Positions 3,971 through 64,000 of a DNA stretch of 64,000 bases are shown here, in pieces. The notes under the pieces were generated by a model, which made no database searches, was not told where the DNA came from, and was given only the letters and a program-made list of their open reading frames with translations. The stretch is from positions 310,001 to 374,000 of the forward strand of contig JAHLWZ010000004.1 of the NCBI GenBank assembly GCA_020536535.1, in the 5' to 3' direction. The DNA is from Pelomyxa schiedti (lineage: Eukaryota > Protista > Evosea). Each line of letters starts with the position of its first letter. Within the stretch, counting starts at the first letter, position 1. The position numbers and the translations under genes were made by a program.

Positions 3971-6041
3971 TCATACTTCAAGAAGAACAAGGTCTCTTCC
4001 ACACAGTACAGCCAAGCAGTCACTTCCAGCCATGCACATGAAAGAGGGTGTGCCAGGTTGGTACACGAATATGTGAACCAATTCGCGGTTGAATATATTG
4101 TACACCTTTGTAGACAGAGTAAGAATAGGGTTGTTAAATTCGGTTATAGGACATACAAAAATTTTCTGCTGCCGAGCAATAAAAAGGAATGGGGTATCCA
4201 GTAGGGAACTGCTGAAATTCATCAAACTTTCTGGAAGTGTGCACAGCTCTTTGCAACTTCTGGTGTCATAAACGGAAATAGAATACCCTACACTGGATTA
4301 AAACGGGCTTGCGAGGATAGAAGCCGGCGTACCACATAAGGCAAGGCATCCATGAGACACAAAGGCTTCTTGAATTGGAAATTTCGGCGTGATCACAGTT
4401 AATGGGGTGTTACTTTCCAGAGAGGCTACCCAAGCAGACTCGGCACCAATAATAACAAAGCGTCGTGAATCCTTATCTATCTCCAACTTGTACACAGGGT
4501 GACCAACATCATACTCCTAGTACGAGTTGCGTTTGCTGGTTATGAATGGAGAGTAAGCTTTCGGGTTGAGAGATTGTGCCAATGCGAACAGATAAAGAGA
4601 TAAAACGAACGAAGGTACAAACCATTTCACAATGGTAGTGTCCACTTCCACGTTTCCATACTTTCACATTGCCGTCGTTTGAGACAGAAATGATAGTTGT
4701 TAGAAAGGGGAAATCTGATGGCTTGACAGAGGCGAGTGCACAAACAGATTTTTTGTGTGCTTGCCACCAAGAGAAGTCCGAATTATTGGAATGCGTACCG
4801 GTTGTATTTGTATGAAGTTGCCATAGTCTGTGCTAGTTTTAATACATTTCATTGTGAAAGCAAAGTCCTAGAATACCTTATCTTTCCATTTGTGTAACCA
4901 GCAACAACCTCGCGGGAGTAAGAGTCATAAAGTATACTTGAGACGCGGTCTCTGTGGTCAGAAGTTCGCATTGTTGTGACATGCACTCCAGAACGAATAT
5001 CATACACCTCCACTAAGGCCTGCATCTCACTCGCAAAGATAAAAATGTGCTTAGAGAGGTCCGTGAAGACTATTCTATGCGGTATAATACTGATTTGAGG
5101 CATTGAATATAACCCACTCAAATCAAGGGACACAACATTGCTGGGAGGCAGTAGATGCCCACAAACGTGTGCTGGCAAGTCAACATCATTCACTGAGGTG
5201 TACAACCTCGCCTTAAGATGCTCATTTGCTTGCCTGATTTCTTTAACGATTCTCGAGGAAATGGGCAGGACAGTGGTGACAACCTGAGGAAAAGGTGGAA
5301 GTAGAGCGGGGATAGGCGGAGGCAAATGAATTGGAGGCAGTGGAATAAAGCTCAGGCGTGCCATGTCTGTTATAGTTTCTTGTCTTACTGTATGCTCAGT
5401 TCCTAATCGTACACATAGTGCATCAATGCACTCATGAACTCCGTCATGCTTGCACACAAGAATGTTGCTAGAATCCCATGCAAGAATACTAGTAGACTCA
5501 GCATAGGAACGAAAGCTATACTAAGGACAATGAGTATTTTGGGAGTTTTTGTGAAAAGTGAGAGCACACAGGAGCAGCACCACAAATGAATTCTTGTTTA
5601 GCATATGAGGTCTTAAAGAACTGCTTCCAGGAAGAAGGTTTCCCCTTGCATAGGGGTGGTGGTGACTGTGGCAGACAAAATCTGCCAGAACACATGCTTC
5701 TCCAAACCTCTTCATCATTAGACATCATATTAAACTGCCTTTTTTTCACGGTTAGTAAACTCAACAGTCAGTGGAAAAAGCCCACAGCACAAAAACAGTT
5801 TATTTTTTGTGTGACAAAGAAGGAACCTATTAACCAAGGAGACAGAGCACAAGTCCTTCAAATTCAAGAACATGAAAATCCTCACCAGTGCATCCCTGTT
5901 AAGTCTCGAGACGAAATTGAACCCACCGGTGTCCAGGAACCCATCCAACAAATCCTCATTCTCCTCATCGTCAACCTCGCCTCCATCACCATCAATCTTC
6001 TTCTCTTGGTGCACGTCACCCCCAGGATTGGGCACGTCCAT
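3971..6041 (-). CDS. F-box protein with a probable beta-propeller-like C-terminus, multi-exon
   Basis: F-box-like 'VSRLNRDALVRIFMFLNLKDLCSVSLVNR...NDEEVWRSMC', followed by collinear minus-strand ORFs 4849-5457, 4298-4495 and 3971-4225 with beta-strand-rich segments. Confidence 0.65.
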
Positions 6042-25799: not shown

Positions 25800-26240
25800 G
25801 CGTCTTTCAAGAGATGTTCTTTGAAACACGAGGCGGTCATTTCCGGGAACACACGCAATAGCATCAACGTGGGCAAACTTATTGCCTTCCTGCCCAAAAT
25901 CTTTTGCTGCGAATCATTTAGTCCGAGATAGTTGTGAAAGCTGGCTGCAAAAGCAATTTGAAACTTTTATAATACACACCTCATCCAATGTCACATGGAA
26001 CTCATGGATTAACCACTCGGCACATCCTGTTTTGTTACTCACAAATAGTGCGTGCAGCAGCTGGTTTTGTTGGTCTTGACGACTTCTTCAGGCACATGGT
26101 ATTGGTTGATAGCCACCGCACAGTTTTTGCAGAATAGATGACGAGGGTATTTCCCAAACCTTGTGAAATGTCCTCCTGAATAGAGAATTCACCACGTGAG
26201 AGGATGAATTTTGCCTGAGAAACCCCAGCATATTGCAACG
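25800..26240 (-). pseudogene. Possible degenerate fragment of the ankyrin-like family, or part of an unresolved gene
   Basis: Short segments 'KTVRWLSTNTM' and 'CAEWLIHEFHVTLDE' resemble the repeats of 6297-8746 ('AEWLHREFNVTADD'). No complete gene model could be built. Confidence 0.3.
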
Positions 26241-26841: not shown

Positions 26842-29800
26842 CTATTTAAATCTTGAAGTTTTTTCCCAGGTGTCTTCCAGAGATGGTCTTGACCTTCCTG
26901 CAGACAAGTTCGTTCAAAGTGGGGGAGATCTTTAGAATCGTCGAAGACAATTCGCCCAAGGCTCAGGGGTCCAGTTTGGAAAGAGATGTTACTTTGTTCT
27001 TAGCTACGTTGAACCACTTACTGTGCACTGTTCTAAGGAGCACATGCAACTTACAGTGTTACGAATAGAAACGAACTGCCCCAGAAAAAGGAGTTTCGAG
27101 GACAAAGGTTTTTTGGGCAAAATTTTGTTTCGGTGTTGCAGGTTTATCCATGTGAACTGTTGTCTGATCGAGGTGATTGTTGAGGAAGAGTGGGTGCTGC
27201 AGAGGGAAGGGGTGGAGGTGGTGATGAGGAACCAGGTACCACACTGTATACTGCCACTGTGCGCTCTAGCTAGTGCTTCTTCCATGTGGCTTCTTGTAGT
27301 GTGAGGCTGATGATGAACCCGGCGTCATTGCTGACGCCGAAGTTTTGTTGTGTGATGACGGTGTTGTGGGGAGCAGGACCGCGCTGCGGGCGAGCTGCTG
27401 GTGCCCAGCGTGGGCGTGGCCGCCGTGCTGCCCGTGCTGGTGGTTGCTGCCCCCGCTGCCGCTCCCGCTCCCGCTGCTGTGGGGAGTCGCCGCGGGCCGC
27501 GGAGTCGGGGTGCACGGCACGGCGGTGCTCGCGGGCGTGGTTCTGGGCGGGGAGGGTGTGCGGGACCTGGAGTGGGTGTGGGGCAACCGCGAGTGCATGT
27601 GTGAGGAAAAGAGGCGGAGGGGGCTCGGGGGACCGGGGACGGAGAGAGGCGGGGGTGAAGAGGTGCGAAGCGGGGATCCTGGGAGCGGCGGAGGTGGGAT
27701 TCCCTCTCCCTCTAAGAAGGAAAGTACATCGGGAATCTCTGTAATATCTGTTTGGGATTCAAATTAGTGAATAAAGAGGGCCTGGTGACAATGGCACTTA
27801 CAATTGGCCTGGTGCTTCGCTGGGTCGGAGTTATCTCTTGAAGAACCCTCCTTTGATCTGTAGTGACCTTTGGGTTTTTTCTCTTTCCGATGATGTCTTC
27901 TATTGGCAGCATATTGCATAGCAACCATAACGGACTCCGCAGTAAAAGCGGAAATTCTCTTCAAATCCTCAGAAATAGCTTTCTTTCTCTCTGGTACTGT
28001 CTCAGATGTAAGAAGGCGAGCAAGCCTATATTAGTTAGATACGACTATAACTAAAGCACGGGGAATCGCACCTCAAAACAGGAAGACAGTTGGCACTTGT
28101 CATCTCTTCTACTATATTCACAACATTTTTTCCCTCCGAGTTTGGTACCGTTACAGATGCTCCCGCCTTTAATTGGAATGATTGGCCCAAGTAACATATC
28201 ATAAAACGAAAGTAGTTCATGGCAACGAAAAAAAAGTGAGAAAGCACCTGAGAAGAGCTAAAGTTTCTGCTTTTCTATCACGTATTACTGCATAATGAAG
28301 TCGTGTGCCAGAAGCATCCAGCTTACATGTAAATATTAGCTTCGAGTGATTTATTGACGATACACACATATCAATGGGGCAGCCACAAACCAGAAGCAGG
28401 CTAAGGCACGCATGGGAGTGGTACTGCAATGCCATGTGCAGAAGGGACCTACAAATGTACTTCAGAAGTCCCTTTCAAAAGAGTTGTTGCAGTAAATTGA
28501 CCTTATATCAGGGGGAAATGTGGTGATCAAATCGAGCCCATGGGCAATACTAAAGAGTAATTTCTTCACACTTCCGTACTTTAAAGACTGATGTACAAAC
28601 TGAAAACAAATAAGTTCATAGAGTTAGCCTAAGGGATGGTGGGTTGTGACCTCATTCAAGTCACTTGGAGGTGGGCCTATAAAGCATTTTTTTATCATAT
28701 TTGGAGACAATCCAATTTCGACGAGAAACACTGAAAGAAAACCAATAAATAAACAATAAAGAAAAGTTCAACATACTTGTCAGCATCAGCTTGTATATGT
28801 TGAATATCTGGGGGGATTGCATTTTCCCACACTGTTGGCTTTTTCATTTCCGAGTGCAGCCAACATCTTGTTGAGAATGTGTTATTTATAACATCCAATT
28901 CATTTTTGCACAACGCACCAGATAAATATCTGGCTCGATGTGATCTAATTTGAGACTTCGCACTTTGCTTATGTGTACCAAGTTGTCTGTGAACACCCTC
29001 AAGGATAAGAAATCCAAAAACCCAAAGATGCACTTTACCTGAGCAATTAACACAAACAATAATTCCCAGATTGATGGAGACCCAGTCTGGATCTTCTTAA
29101 AAGGGAAGAAAGTGAACAAAAGGATAGACCTGGTGCCCCACAATCAGCACATGCCAAGTTAGTTTAAATTTGGGTTATCTACAGTGGCAGGTTTTTCTTT
29201 TGTACAGAAGAATTAGAAGAATATCCATCACGCAATTCTATTTCAAGACAACCTTCATTTTTTTGCATGAGATTTGCTCTGGAGTTATTAATTGTAGAGA
29301 TCCACGAATTCATTTGGTCTTGAGATTCTGCCTGAAACAAAAGTAAAAAGGAATATTCCTCAGGTTTTCTATGGCAACCTGCAGAAGAAACGAATTTGCT
29401 GGAGGAGTGATAATCTCAAAACAGAATCGTCTGTCAAGGTCACTAAACATGGAGGGTGGTCAGTATTATGTCTGTTACTCTGGCCTTGGATGCATCCTAG
29501 TTAGATCTTTTAGCTGGGTAGATGGGAGATGATGTCTACTTTGCCATCTTTGTAGTAAAAAAACTTCTCATTCTCAATTTTGAAGTACCTTCGCTGCCAG
29601 CTCTTGCCAAAACTAGTCGTTCTCTTGAATAAATACCTGAAGTCAAGTAAAAAGCAATCTTTCACTCTTTAATGCTACGAACCCTTCCATCTCCAAAATT
29701 GTGGTGGGTGCAGCTTGAATCGAAGGCAGATTTGGTAAACCTCCTTTCTAAAGTAAAAGTGAGTAACAAAGGCACAATAAAGAGGTAGATGCGGTACAGA

Positions 29801-51707: not shown

Positions 51708-51897
51708 AGGGTTCTGGGCAAAGAGTCAAACAAAAATCCCTACTAGTTCTCTGGCATAGTACAAAAAAGGGTTTGTGGAACTTGAGAATTCGTGATTCAA
51801 CAACAAGAACGCCGTAAACGGAGTTCGTTTGTGTGGCTAATACGAAAAAAAAAAAAAAGAAGTTGAAACTTGAAACAGGTCGTTGTGTGACATCCCA

Positions 51898-54351
51898 ATG
51901 TCCCTTGTATATTATCCGGTGAGTCCGAAACAGTTAGAGATCCTCAGGATCGTCTCTATCTCACGAGTCCTGTGGCAGCACGTCATCCCCCGCGCCCTCG
52001 CGCCCCCTCCCATAATCAGCAAAACTCCCCCACGGCTGCTCGTCCCCACCCTGATCTACCCCGCGATCGCGGATGCGGCCTCCCCCAGCGCCGCCGCCGC
52101 GCAAGTTGCCGCCGCCGCAAACAACACCGAGTGCGGGTGCGTGTCCCCGCACGCCGGAGATTGCCAGCCGTCGACATGCGACCCAAGCCCCGCGCTGGAC
52201 GCGTACCACCGCGTCCTCGTGTGCGCCGGCGAGGCCCTGTTCCCGCTGCGAACCGTGTGCCTCCGCGCGCTATTGGACGTCCTGTCTCGCGAGAACTTCT
52301 TCCCGCACGAGCAGGCGTTGATGTCTTTCGCGAGGAACGGGGCGCTGGCGATGGCCAAGGCGCTGATGGCGGAGTGGTACAGGTTGGCCCCCCCGCCTTC
52401 GCTTGCTCCTTCTTCGGTGAGAGTGTGCTCCGCCGCGGCTGCTGCTAGTGCTTGCGGCGATGCTAACGCCGACACTATTGTGCTTATGCCGGCGCCGCCG
52501 CCGTGGTGCTATTCCTTTGGTGTCACGCCGTCGGTTGCAAAGGCTTTCGTTGTTAACTTGCTTGCGGCAAGTTGCCAAGCTGGGAGCGTTCCGTTTTCTG
52601 AATGGGTCATGTCCCTTCATGCAGATATGATTCCTCGCGCTGACCTTGTACAAATATTTAAGACTGCTGTTGCCTACCCAGAAATTTTGGATCTGTTGTG
52701 GGAGGAATTTTCCCCCTCATTGACATTGAAAGAAACTTTTGGAAACGCTGGGGCAGCAGGCACAGTTCTTCTGCAAAATATTGCAATCACACGAATTAAT
52801 ACTGTAAAATGGCTGTTATCTCATTTTGACATACCACTGCTCGAGATCCGCAAAGATCCTTCTTTCTCTTCGTATTTCACTCAATGTGCCCCTAGGCCGG
52901 ATAGTGCCGCGTCCCTGCATTGGCTGATTGCCACATTCTGCACTAACCGCGATGTCGATGAATCAAACCTTCTGTCAGAAGCTTTGAAATGCGCTTGTCG
53001 TGGTGGAAATGTAACTTCTACAGAGATTATTATGTCTTTTCTATCAGCTGAAGCTGTACGTAAACTACCAAAACACGACTGGGATGCAAAGTGCATTATC
53101 TGGGTATGTGAAAAAATCGGAGAGCCACTCCCCAGATCCGTTTTTGAGAAAAGCTGCTTGTTGGATAATGTTCCACTTGTTCAATCACTAGCAGTGATGC
53201 TGGCTATAACACCGCTGGAAGTAAGAGCAGAGAGACATCGGTTACTTATGTTAGTCCTTGGTTCAAAGAAATTCCAGGTAGCTCAGTGGCTGCTTGATTA
53301 CTATGGTATCATGAGAGGACAAGCGCCCTACGTACTGCGCCTAGTCTGCGGGGCGGGGAACGTCGATTTTGCACAGTGGGTGACTACAAGGTTTAACTTC
53401 TCACGACGCGTGGTGCAGAACAACAAAAACCGTATCCTGCGGGCGTGTTGCCGTGACGGCCTTGCACCTATGGTTAAGTGGCTCGTTGTTCAATTTGCAC
53501 TTACCATTCAAGATGCCCGAAGCTGTGACAATGGAGCCTTCAGGGCATGCATCGAAAGTGGACAGCTTCCTTTAGTGCAATGGTTAACAGACCACTTTAA
53601 CCTAACGCCTGATGACGCGAGGAGCCGAAATAACTATGCCCTCTGGGTGGCCTCCTGGTGGAACCGCCTTGATATTGTCAAGTGGCTTGTGGAGCGCTTC
53701 AATCTCACGGCAGAGGATGTCACTCAGTGCAAGAGTGGGCGTTCTGCTTTGTACAGTGTCCCGATTGATACCTGGCTGCAAGAAAAACTCAACATGGCTT
53801 CGGGCGCGCAAGTAGCAGCCGACTATTCCTTAGCTTTTCCAACTGCCGTTCAAGTGGCTGGGGCCCAATGGGCCGAAATCAGCAACTCGCTACTGACGAA
53901 CTCCGGCAAGATGGGAGACGCCCAGCTGAGCGCGCTCCTAAACGGAGGTTACCGCCCATCAGTCGTCAAGTGGCTGATTCAAAGGACCGGCCTTGTAGAG
54001 CGATTCGCCGCCGCTACCGGCGAATTCCAGCCCGTTACGCAGCTAATACTCACTTCGTGGCACCCAAGCCTCGACCAACCGCGCTGGCTTGTTCTGCGGC
54101 TAGGAATTCAGCCCGGAGACCCGCGGATACCCGTTCCGACGTTACTCCGCGGCGCGGTTGGCAACAACAACTGGGGCGCTATGAAGTGGCTATGCGAGTG
54201 GTTCACTGTCCCTGTGGAGCAGGTGCAGGCTGCCATTGACCAGCACGCGAGGCAGTTCGGGTCCTGGAATTCCAAGGAACGCCAGGAGTTCCAACAATGG
54301 TACTACCAGAAAATGGGCGTCTCTCCACCCTCAAAGTGTTGTTTGCAATAG
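51898..54351 (+). CDS. Intronless ankyrin-like repeat protein with a lineage-specific header
   Basis: Single ORF of about 817 aa; header 'IVSISRVLWQHVIP...GEALFPL'; repeats such as 'AFRACIESGQLPLVQWLTDHFNLTPDDAR'. Confidence 0.88.
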   Translation: MSLVYYPVSPKQLEILRIVSISRVLWQHVIPRALAPPPIISKTPPRLLVPTLIYPAIADAASPSAAAAQVAAAANNTECGCVSPHAGDCQPSTCDPSPALDAYHRVLVCAGEALFPLRTVCLRALLDVLSRENFFPHEQALMSFARNGALAMAKALMAEWYRLAPPPSLAPSSVRVCSAAAAASACGDANADTIVLMPAPPPWCYSFGVTPSVAKAFVVNLLAASCQAGSVPFSEWVMSLHADMIPRADLVQIFKTAVAYPEILDLLWEEFSPSLTLKETFGNAGAAGTVLLQNIAITRINTVKWLLSHFDIPLLEIRKDPSFSSYFTQCAPRPDSAASLHWLIATFCTNRDVDESNLLSEALKCACRGGNVTSTEIIMSFLSAEAVRKLPKHDWDAKCIIWVCEKIGEPLPRSVFEKSCLLDNVPLVQSLAVMLAITPLEVRAERHRLLMLVLGSKKFQVAQWLLDYYGIMRGQAPYVLRLVCGAGNVDFAQWVTTRFNFSRRVVQNNKNRILRACCRDGLAPMVKWLVVQFALTIQDARSCDNGAFRACIESGQLPLVQWLTDHFNLTPDDARSRNNYALWVASWWNRLDIVKWLVERFNLTAEDVTQCKSGRSALYSVPIDTWLQEKLNMASGAQVAADYSLAFPTAVQVAGAQWAEISNSLLTNSGKMGDAQLSALLNGGYRPSVVKWLIQRTGLVERFAAATGEFQPVTQLILTSWHPSLDQPRWLVLRLGIQPGDPRIPVPTLLRGAVGNNNWGAMKWLCEWFTVPVEQVQAAIDQHARQFGSWNSKERQEFQQWYYQKMGVSPPSKCCLQ

Positions 54352-56860: not shown

Positions 56861-58646
<1,786 letters not shown>

Positions 58647-61307: not shown

Positions 61308-62954
61308 ATGCAGAAGAAGCAGTCACGCAACCAACCCAAGGAGGGATCTAGCACGCCTGCTACTGAGGCGAAAGATGCAACAAAAAGCGTTGATGCACGC
61401 TCCTCCAAGATTGATGGGGCCCGTAACCTGGTGTTCGTTTTGGGGCTCAATTACTTGATCACAACTTTCACTCTAAACTACCTCGCTGGGAGGAGAATCA
61501 TTGATACAAGGCTACTGGTCACTGGCTTTTTGTCTGTGGATTTCCTAATACTGGTTGGTACTTCGAAACAAAAACTGCTCACAATCATAACACAAAAAAA
61601 AATCATCTGTTTAACGAAAATTCAAGGTTTGCTGGTTTTTGTTAGTGGAAATCTTCCTTTCATTCACTGCATGGGGTTTGATTGCTATTTTTCAAATCCA
61701 CAAGTTGCCCAAGTTTTGGTCAGGATTAATACACTACGGTCACTTGTCCATCCTCTTTGGAAGGTTTTTCCCCATATAACAATGTTATTATTCATTGTTT
61801 TAGTACAATGTACGTGTGTCTCTGCTGGAAGCTCGCATTTACCCCTCGTACTGCCGGATTTGTAGAAATGCTTGTTCTTTGCCTCAAAATGCACTCCTTT
61901 GTACACTATCACAGACACACGGTCCCCACTCCGTCCCCTCCTACTTTCTGGCAGTACTTCGAATATCTACTGTTTCCAACCCTCATTTATCAGCCGTCTT
62001 ACCCAAGAACGAGCCACATTGACTGGCGCTATATGATACAGCAACTAGTTTTGTGCGTTGGCACTCTTACAGTTGAGTTGTGACTCTCTTCATTTTCTTG
62101 CTCACATTCACGAAGGTACTGTATGTGCTGACAACCGAAGTGATTGCGCCAGTGCTCGAACAAGCAATTGTAAGTCCTCCTTTGGAGAGTGTGATGAAAT
62201 TGTTGATTCCATTCCTTCTTGGGTACTTGCTGATGTGGTTCATGGTTTTTGACATTATTTTAACTGGTATGCTTGAAGCCTTTTCTTGTTCTTTCCCACA
62301 AGTCACAGGGTTTGCTGAAATTTCCCGATTCAAACCAAGAGAGTTCTATCTCGATTGGTGGAATAGCACTACCTTCTCAGAGTATAATCGCAGATGGAAC
62401 AAGCCAGTCCACGAATGGCTCACCAAATACGTCTACATTGAAGTAAGTTGACGCATGCCTGTAAAAACCCATCTTAATCCATCTCTCAGGTACAAAACAG
62501 TTGGGGTTGCTCCAAAATTGTGGCTGGGCTGTGCACTTTCTTTGTATCTGCTATTGCACATGAATTGTTCTTCATTGTCACTTTTCGTATTGTGAGAATG
62601 TACTGGTTGACTGTAAGCGTTTCAGCTAAAGTGTGAATTGTCTTATTTCCCAAAGCTTATGATGCTGCAAATGCCACTGTATATTCTGGGAGAAGGCCTC
62701 CGGGACACAAAGCTTGGGAACTTTGTATGTTGCTTTTCTCCAAGAATGCTTCCGACTCAACAATATTGCAGATTTTCTGGCAAGGCATTGTGATAGGTAT
62801 TCCCATGCAAGTCGTTATGTACGCCCGTGAAGCATTTGGCGGCTATTCCATGTTTTGGACTCTTCAATTCCCATGCATTTGCATTGCTAGTTCAGCCGCT
62901 TTACTGGGAGGAGTTTTGATGCTGTTCTCAAACAACCACAAAAAACGAGTGTAA
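61308..62954 (+). CDS. MBOAT acyltransferase of the sterol O-acyltransferase/DGAT1 family
   Basis: '[15 protein letters not shown]', '[28 protein letters not shown]', 'FFVSAIAHE'. Confidence 0.92.
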
Positions 62955-63160
62955 GCAAATAGTAAAAGAATTCAAAAAAAAAAAAACTCAAAATTTTTGT
63001 TTCCAAATATTTGTATCGAGGTCTGTCTCTTTTTGTCCAGGGGATTGGCCTCACAATCATGTCTCACTCTCCACCATAAACCACCCATTTGATTGGACCC
63101 ACAGTAATTCCTTTGAACTGCAAAGAAAGGAGATGACTGACAGGTACAAGGTAAATGGGG

Positions 63161-63247
63161 GTATCTCTGCCTATCTGATACATCAGCCACAACGCGAACT
63201 GCTAAAGTGCATTTATAGCGCCGTGCGTCACACAGAAAGCAGAGTAC
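63161..63247 (-). promoter_or_regulatory. SECIS element (type II) in the 3' UTR of selenophosphate synthetase
   Basis: Minus strand GTACTCTGCTTTCTGT-GTGAC-GCACGGCGCTAT-AAA-TGCACTTTAGCA-GTTCGCGTTGTGGC-TGAT-GTATCAGATAGGCAGAGATAC. It has a GUGA/UGAU quartet, 12-nt helix II arm, AAA bulge, apical mini-stem and a helix I of about 14 bp. Confidence 0.88.
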
Positions 63248-63311
63248 AGTCGATAGTGACCCAATCATGCTTGGCAAAGGCTGTGACTATGGAGACAGCT
63301 TGATTCTACCA

Positions 63312-64000
63312 TTAGGACACTTCAACAATGGTAACATTTGTCCTGATTGTTGCGCGAGGGACAGCGGAGGAAACGACCTGTTGGAGAGAAAGTGAGTACT
63401 TGAGGGACAATCACTGAACCATCTAGTACCTCTCCGACAATCCAGGCAGGATAGCCATCTATTGCCTGTAACTCCGAGCACATGGCTTGCGCTGCTGCAA
63501 GCGACGGTAGGCAAACGAGAAGTCCTCCAGAGGTCTCTGCTGATACTCCAACAAGGAGCCCAAAGTCGTAGGCATCATTTACGCGAGCCATGCCAGCTAT
63601 CACAGGTAGCGTGTGGATTTCAATGGAACAGGGAGTGGTCTGCTCCTTAGCCTTCCATTTTGTTAGTTTTTAGTTGGTATGGAGGAGGAAGCACACGAGA
63701 TTTTGAGAATGGCCAAGTATGCCAAACCCTGTCACATCTGTTGCTGCATGAGCTCCTGAAATTCGTTAGATGCAGCAATTGGTGGTGTCCCTACCATATT
63801 TGTGCATTAGCTCTGCGCCTGTCTTATTCAATCTAGACATGTTGGCTGCAGCAAGATTGTAAGCTCGTGTCACCTCTTCGGGAGTGATGATCCCTTTGAT
63901 CTCGTCCCACATTCCAGGAGTATTTGGCTTCTGTGCACACATCCATTGATGTGCGTTAACTGCTAACTGCGTACCCAGAGGTTTTGTGAGAATAACGATG
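63312..64000 (-). CDS. SEPHS2: Selenophosphate synthetase (eukaryotic SEPHS type), 3' part; the N-terminus is beyond the window
   Basis: 'ILTKPLGTQLAVNAHQW', '[35 protein letters not shown]', 'AETSGGLLVCL', 'AWIVGEVV'. The SPS2 (Sec-type) assignment is inferred from the SECIS. Confidence 0.93.

Follow-up and report, generated by a model that had tools for sequence, protein, structure and literature searches.

A Predicted GUGA-Core SECIS Element in the 3′ Untranslated Region of a Protist Selenophosphate Synthetase mRNA

Does the hairpin that follows the selenophosphate synthetase (SPS) gene at the right end of this window, the whole 64-kb stretch of DNA that was analysed, serve to recode UGA as selenocysteine (Sec)? 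An SPS2 protein that contains Sec and whose mRNA carries a SECIS element in its 3′ untranslated region (UTR) is a textbook arrangement, known from several protist groups. We propose that the hairpin (63247–63161, minus strand), which lies in the 3′ UTR of an SPS2 mRNA and has a GUGA core, works as a eukaryotic SECIS element of type II, and we assign this reading, in which function is predicted, a probability of roughly 0.9. Neither the pairing of SPS2 and SECIS described here nor its mechanism is new; the lineage in which it occurs is poorly sampled, its nearest SPS relatives being only 54–59% identical.

The gene and its mRNA

What gene precedes the hairpin? The right end of the window falls inside a minus-strand gene, and translation of the part that lies within the window yields 183 residues, the C-terminal portion of an SPS of eukaryotic type. 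The frame read from 63999 opens with IVILTKPLGTQ, passes through SAETSGGLL and PAWIVGE, and closes with VTIVEVS followed by a TAA stop codon at 63314–63312. The coding exon that is cut by the window edge occupies 63795–64000, its junction being given by RNA contigs, and it is followed by a 39-nt intron (63756–63794), an exon supported by RNA contigs and by alignment to relatives (63697–63755), a 45-nt intron that was located with RNA contigs (63652–63696), the third exon (63430–63651), a 52-nt intron (63378–63429), and the final exon (63312–63377), which contains the C-terminus and the stop codon and was delimited by translation and alignment. The three short introns all have GT..AG boundaries; they were first predicted from the reading frame and later compared with RNA contigs.

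The third exon encodes 74 residues, including SAETSGGLL, and is supported both by RNA contigs and by its matches in the PDB to the Leishmania protein (5l16) and human SPS1 (3fd5), each with an E-value of about 1e-12. When this exon was used to search a library of 1.84 billion proteins, 186 representatives were recovered, the best of them 57–59% identical. Similarly, BLAST shows that the spliced 183 residues are 54–59% identical to eukaryotic SPS2 proteins containing the PF00586 (AIRS) and PF02769 (AIRS_C) domains, including those of Balamuthia mandrillaris and Vannella robusta, and the top relative among 5.8 billion protein clusters is 59% identical. Pfam searches with the individual exons gave no assignment, the exons being too short when taken singly. 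The SPS profile used for the protein search combined a relative with the window exons, minus the exon-3a and exon-4 fragments, which MAFFT had misplaced. Judged from its translation, the minus-strand gene is a eukaryotic-type SPS (SelD), as originally predicted, because of the PDB matches and the 54–59% identity to SPS proteins that bear AIRS and AIRS_C domains.

Is the gene an SPS2 or an SPS1? The window gene belongs to the same protein family as animal SPS1, which comprises Thr, Arg, Gly and Leu forms as well as UGA forms that lack a SECIS. However, these non-Sec/Cys forms arose by gene duplication only within metazoans and have no SECIS (Mariotti et al. 2015, PMC4561486), whereas the window gene has one. 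We have therefore classed it as SPS2.

Is the hairpin part of the SPS2 mRNA? The RNA evidence consists of contigs from three runs: X3 and X7, both single-cell RNA-seq libraries, and X4, whose type is not on record. The intron at 63756–63794 is skipped in the X3 and X4 contigs, and the intron at 63378–63429 is skipped in X3, X4 and X7. Since exactly the three predicted introns are missing, these contigs derive from RNA. The longest view of the transcript is given by X3 record 3 (1170 nt), which begins 296 nt past the window edge and runs through all of the exons, the stop codon and the hairpin to 62991; it is continuous from 63375 to 62991 and joined to the upstream exons. The X4 contig extends to 63061 and the X7 contig to 63069, and both include the hairpin. 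The SPS2 3′ UTR is thus at least 321 nt long (62991–63311, minus strand), as read from the spliced X3 contig, and the hairpin occupies nucleotides 65–151 of it. The hairpin is part of the mature, spliced SPS2 mRNA. Polyadenylation upstream of the hairpin, the outcome that had been named beforehand as speaking against the original prediction, is ruled out by the spliced X3 contig that reaches 62991, and the X4 and X7 contigs likewise read through the hairpin. A 15.9-kb genomic contig from run X1 matches the window letter for letter and reaches 1133 nt past its edge; it may be the source of the window, and it consequently offers no independent support.

The RNA contigs also bear on the surroundings of the transcript. 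In the SPS 3′ UTR, downstream of the hairpin, the X4 contig has one extra T after 63107, and X3 shows two base differences from the window within 63794–64000; these are probably strain differences between the samples. A convergent gene of the MBOAT family (DGAT1/ACAT-like, with an FYxDWWN motif; Pfam MBOAT E-value 1.7e-15) lies at 62080–62968 on the plus strand, and its GT..AG introns at 62613–62655 and 62725–62771 are borne out by RNA contigs. The contigs of the MBOAT gene end at 62932 and 62968, short of the hairpin. The convergent transcript ends (SPS at 62991, MBOAT at 62968) are separated by a 13-nt A/T homopolymer at 62974–62986, and given this homopolymer the ends of both sets of contigs may be assembly breaks or products of internal priming and not true poly(A) sites. 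Farther from the SPS gene, the open reading frame of the last EF-1 alpha exon (56861–57403, minus strand) continues for about 55 residues beyond the usual ...KVTKAA.KAQ end with a sequence rich in Ala, Thr, Pro and Gly, and then reaches a TGA; this tail either belongs to the protein as a genuine C-terminal extension or results from an unrecognised intron or stop. An uninterrupted open reading frame of 822 codons with repeated ...VKWL.../...QWL... units lies at 51883–54351 on the plus strand and is absent from the recorded called genes. Scans of the window for bacterial-type promoters and terminators, which are not relevant here, were empty.

Anatomy of the hairpin

What are the parts of the hairpin, and how do they compare with those of a type II SECIS? 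The entire element spans 63161–63247 on the minus strand and was delimited by Rfam alignment, folding, pattern scanning and shuffling. The 5′ arm of helix I, GTACTCTGCTTTCTG (63233–63247), begins 64 nt past the stop codon and pairs with the 3′ arm, CAGATAGGCAGAGATAC (63161–63177), which was located by the fold and the scan. Drawn by hand, helix I contains 15 pairs with two single-base bulges, and it closes the internal loop. The 5′ side of the core is GUGAC (63227–63231), consisting of GUGA at 63231–63228 plus a C, and aligns to the AUGA of the Rfam SECIS_1 model. The 3′ side is UGAU (63182–63185), which aligns to the CUGAU of SECIS_1 and whose GA is drawn in tandem G·A pairs with the UGA of the 5′ side. 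With the core drawn in this way, the 5′ arm of helix II, GCACGGCGC (63218–63226), forms nine pairs with the 3′ arm at 63186–63195, which was likewise found by the fold and the scan, and a single G (G63188) is bulged. The unpaired AAA motif (63212–63214) follows 13 nt after the core UGA, aligns to the AAA of SECIS_1, and is unpaired in the minimum free energy (MFE) fold. Finally, the apex (63200–63211) is a mini-stem in which UGC (63211–63209) pairs with GCA (63202–63200) around a 6-nt loop; this feature of type II elements is present in both the MFE and the centroid folds.

The MFE and centroid structures that ViennaRNA computed for 63155–63255 both have this architecture (−31.7 kcal/mol; z-score −1.8), and helix II and the apex folded alone gave −14.1 kcal/mol. 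The type II shape that the original prediction had drawn from the letters of the sequence was therefore recovered by computation, and the positions that it had given for the stop codon, both arms of helix I, both sides of the core, the AAA motif and the mini-stem are all correct on the minus strand.

The window hairpin resembles the Rfam type II family (SECIS_1, RF00031) in its 3′ UTR site, its helix I, its internal loop, its kink-turn core with UGA opposite GA, its helix II of about 9–12 positions, its unpaired AAA and its apical mini-stem. It departs from the family model in several respects. The window core starts with G and not A, one additional base precedes the AAA, and the internal loop is very short, since helix I reaches nearly to the core. 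The score of the window hairpin against the model is 18 bits, under the 35-bit gathering score.

The catalytic codon and competing readings

Where is the codon that the hairpin would serve? In alignments to relatives, the first Met downstream of Sec lies about 25–30 residues after it, and the IVILTKPLG sequence at the window edge follows about 128 residues after that Met. These distances place the catalytic codon of the K-G-U-G-C-K motif outside the window, by the alignment some 480 or more coding nt past 64000, introns not counted. The in-frame TGA had been expected just beyond the right edge, and in this respect the original prediction is corrected.

What occupies this position in other SPS genes? 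DNA was examined for six relatives, namely the Balamuthia genome (L002), a Vannella transcript (L003), and transcripts or contigs L005–L008. All six contain an in-frame TGA at the position of U in K-G-U-G-C-K, and the called proteins of all six begin at a Met downstream of it. For example, the Balamuthia mandrillaris protein annotated as ‘Selenide, water dikinase 1’ (GCA_031835245.2; 311 aa) starts at a Met that follows the TGA (…AELKG, TGA, G, intron, CKVPQ…; L002:2300–2500). Our own scan found a SECIS-like hairpin about 240 nt past the stop codon of this gene (L002:3980–4041), comprising AUGA, an 11-bp helix II, AAA and UGA, and the GenBank entry looks like a mis-annotated selenoprotein. The expectation that annotators would truncate such genes is thus borne out by the GenBank Balamuthia protein and by the other called relatives.

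The Balamuthia and Vannella genes are 54–55% identical to the 183 residues of the window gene, and each shares with the other a UGA at KG-U-GCK, a SECIS-like hairpin in the 3′ region, and a called protein that starts after the UGA. The cores of their hairpins are AUGA, whereas the window core is GUGA, and the Balamuthia hairpin stands about 240 nt past its stop codon as compared with 64 nt in the window gene. The identity of the window SPS to these two proteins is no higher than its identity to animal SPS, and so no specific kinship is shown. Three large protein searches, made with a full-length relative, with exon 3 alone and with a mixed profile, and checked by BLAST, returned no protein of the window's organism. 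Likewise, exact-product look-ups of window open reading frames (SPS exon 3, EF1A exon 1, an 817-aa product and a UTR antisense product) returned no recorded match, a search of JGI metagenome contigs for a 41-mer taken from the window edge gave no exact match, and a scan of the 64-kb window for tRNA genes found none.

The window SPS is expected to carry Sec because the non-Sec/Cys forms are restricted to metazoans and because the SECIS in its UTR is intact. Given the well-formed hairpin in its 3′ UTR, this gene almost certainly encodes a selenoprotein, with a predicted UGA of its own, and automatic annotation would truncate it. Could the hairpin instead be a relic, left intact and unused after a recent change of the Sec codon to Cys? 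Such changes have occurred repeatedly in the evolution of SPS2 and other selenoproteins (PMC4561486), and the catalytic codon of the window gene falls outside the 64-kb window. Against this reading, every core feature of the hairpin is intact, which is unexpected in an unconstrained element, and the UGA is kept in each of the six relatives. We consider a relic quite unlikely, and favor a SECIS that is in use.

Could the hairpin be a UTR stem-loop that resembles a SECIS by chance or that serves some other function, such as mRNA stability or localisation? UTR hairpins of such length are common, and the z-score of the fold is only −1.8. The Rfam score also falls short of the gathering threshold, and a scan of the whole 64-kb window at gathering thresholds found no match to any Rfam family. 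Nevertheless, SECIS_1 is the top match in 62800–63400, and the alignment covers the full length of the model; the E-value is 1.3 when counted across 4227 families and about 3e-4 for SECIS_1 alone. When the 3′ regions of all six UGA-containing relatives were searched with SECIS_1, there was no match at E ≤ 10, with the UTRs of L005 and L006 possibly incomplete. We conclude from this result that SECIS_1 detects such protist elements poorly, and the 18 bits of the window hairpin are accordingly not evidence against it.

A second line of evidence comes from a consensus scan of our own, which demands [AG]UGA, GA, a helix II with 9 bp or more, an unpaired AA 10–14 nt on, and a helix I with 10 bp or more. 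Across both strands of the window (128 kb) its sole match is the hairpin at 63161–63247, and dinucleotide shuffles of the window contain a mean of 0.225 sites per 128 kb. For the 321-nt UTR, 3 of 5000 dinucleotide shuffles attain the thresholds (about 6e-4). These thresholds were set with the site already seen, and the p-values are somewhat optimistic; the true p is somewhat larger yet still small. The core, the spacing, the AAA and both helices would therefore seldom coincide by chance in the UTR, and they do so on the right strand, within the mRNA, and in exactly the gene family that is expected to carry a SECIS. The hairpin is more than chance would yield, and we regard a look-alike stem-loop as very unlikely, slightly more so than a relic.

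A relaxed form of the pattern matches four sites in the window, including the real one, where 1.5 are expected. We attribute the other three (4690–4726, 26138–26179 and 27301–27334, all plus strand) to chance, there being no selenoprotein-like gene upstream. The site at 26138 adjoins a minus-strand gene that is metallo-beta-lactamase-like.

Finally, the long, near-perfect inverted repeat formed by helix I might suggest that a mobile element or MITE has inserted into the UTR, a reading that we reject as extremely improbable, since the 27-nt 5′ part of the hairpin occurs once in the window even when up to 3 mismatches are allowed, flanking repeat features are absent, and the internal part contains motifs specific to SECIS elements.

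The GUGA core and selenocysteine use in this lineage

How would the SPS2 hairpin act? Following the established eukaryotic pathway, we propose that SBP2 would bind the kink-turn core of the hairpin, in which GUGA lies opposite GA. Second, the bound SBP2 would recruit eEFSec with Sec-tRNA(Sec). The UGA predicted at the N-terminal K-G-U-G-C-K, a position past the window edge and about 1.1 kb 5′ of the hairpin in the mRNA, would then be read as selenocysteine and not as a stop.

Is a GUGA core compatible with such a role? The original prediction had treated GUGA as a known variant of the core. In Chlamydomonas, Ostreococcus and the sponge Amphimedon it is the GUGA_AA form of the SECIS that predominates, and the sponge genes concerned include SPS (PMC3473315). 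The window SECIS shares the GUGA...AA primary pattern with the elements of these three organisms, although they are unrelated to the organism of the window. The type of core tends to follow the organism and not the gene family (PMC3473315). The window's organism may use GUGA-core type II elements throughout its genome, as the green algae and the sponge do, a proposition to which we give even odds. If true, it would suggest that SBP2 and the SECIS core have evolved together in this lineage, and that its selenoproteome is sizeable and has yet to be annotated.

What does the element mean for the biology of the organism? SPS2 with a SECIS is an accepted marker of Sec use in eukaryotes, and among protists SPS2 has a scattered distribution that takes in Amoebozoa (PMC4561486). 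By this marker the organism would recode UGA. In practical terms, standard gene callers will truncate or split its SPS2 and other selenoprotein genes, and its SECIS elements will escape searches that are tuned to AUGA or that apply the Rfam gathering score. The SPS2 gene and hairpin described here add one more record to what is a patchy picture of where the Sec trait occurs in protists.
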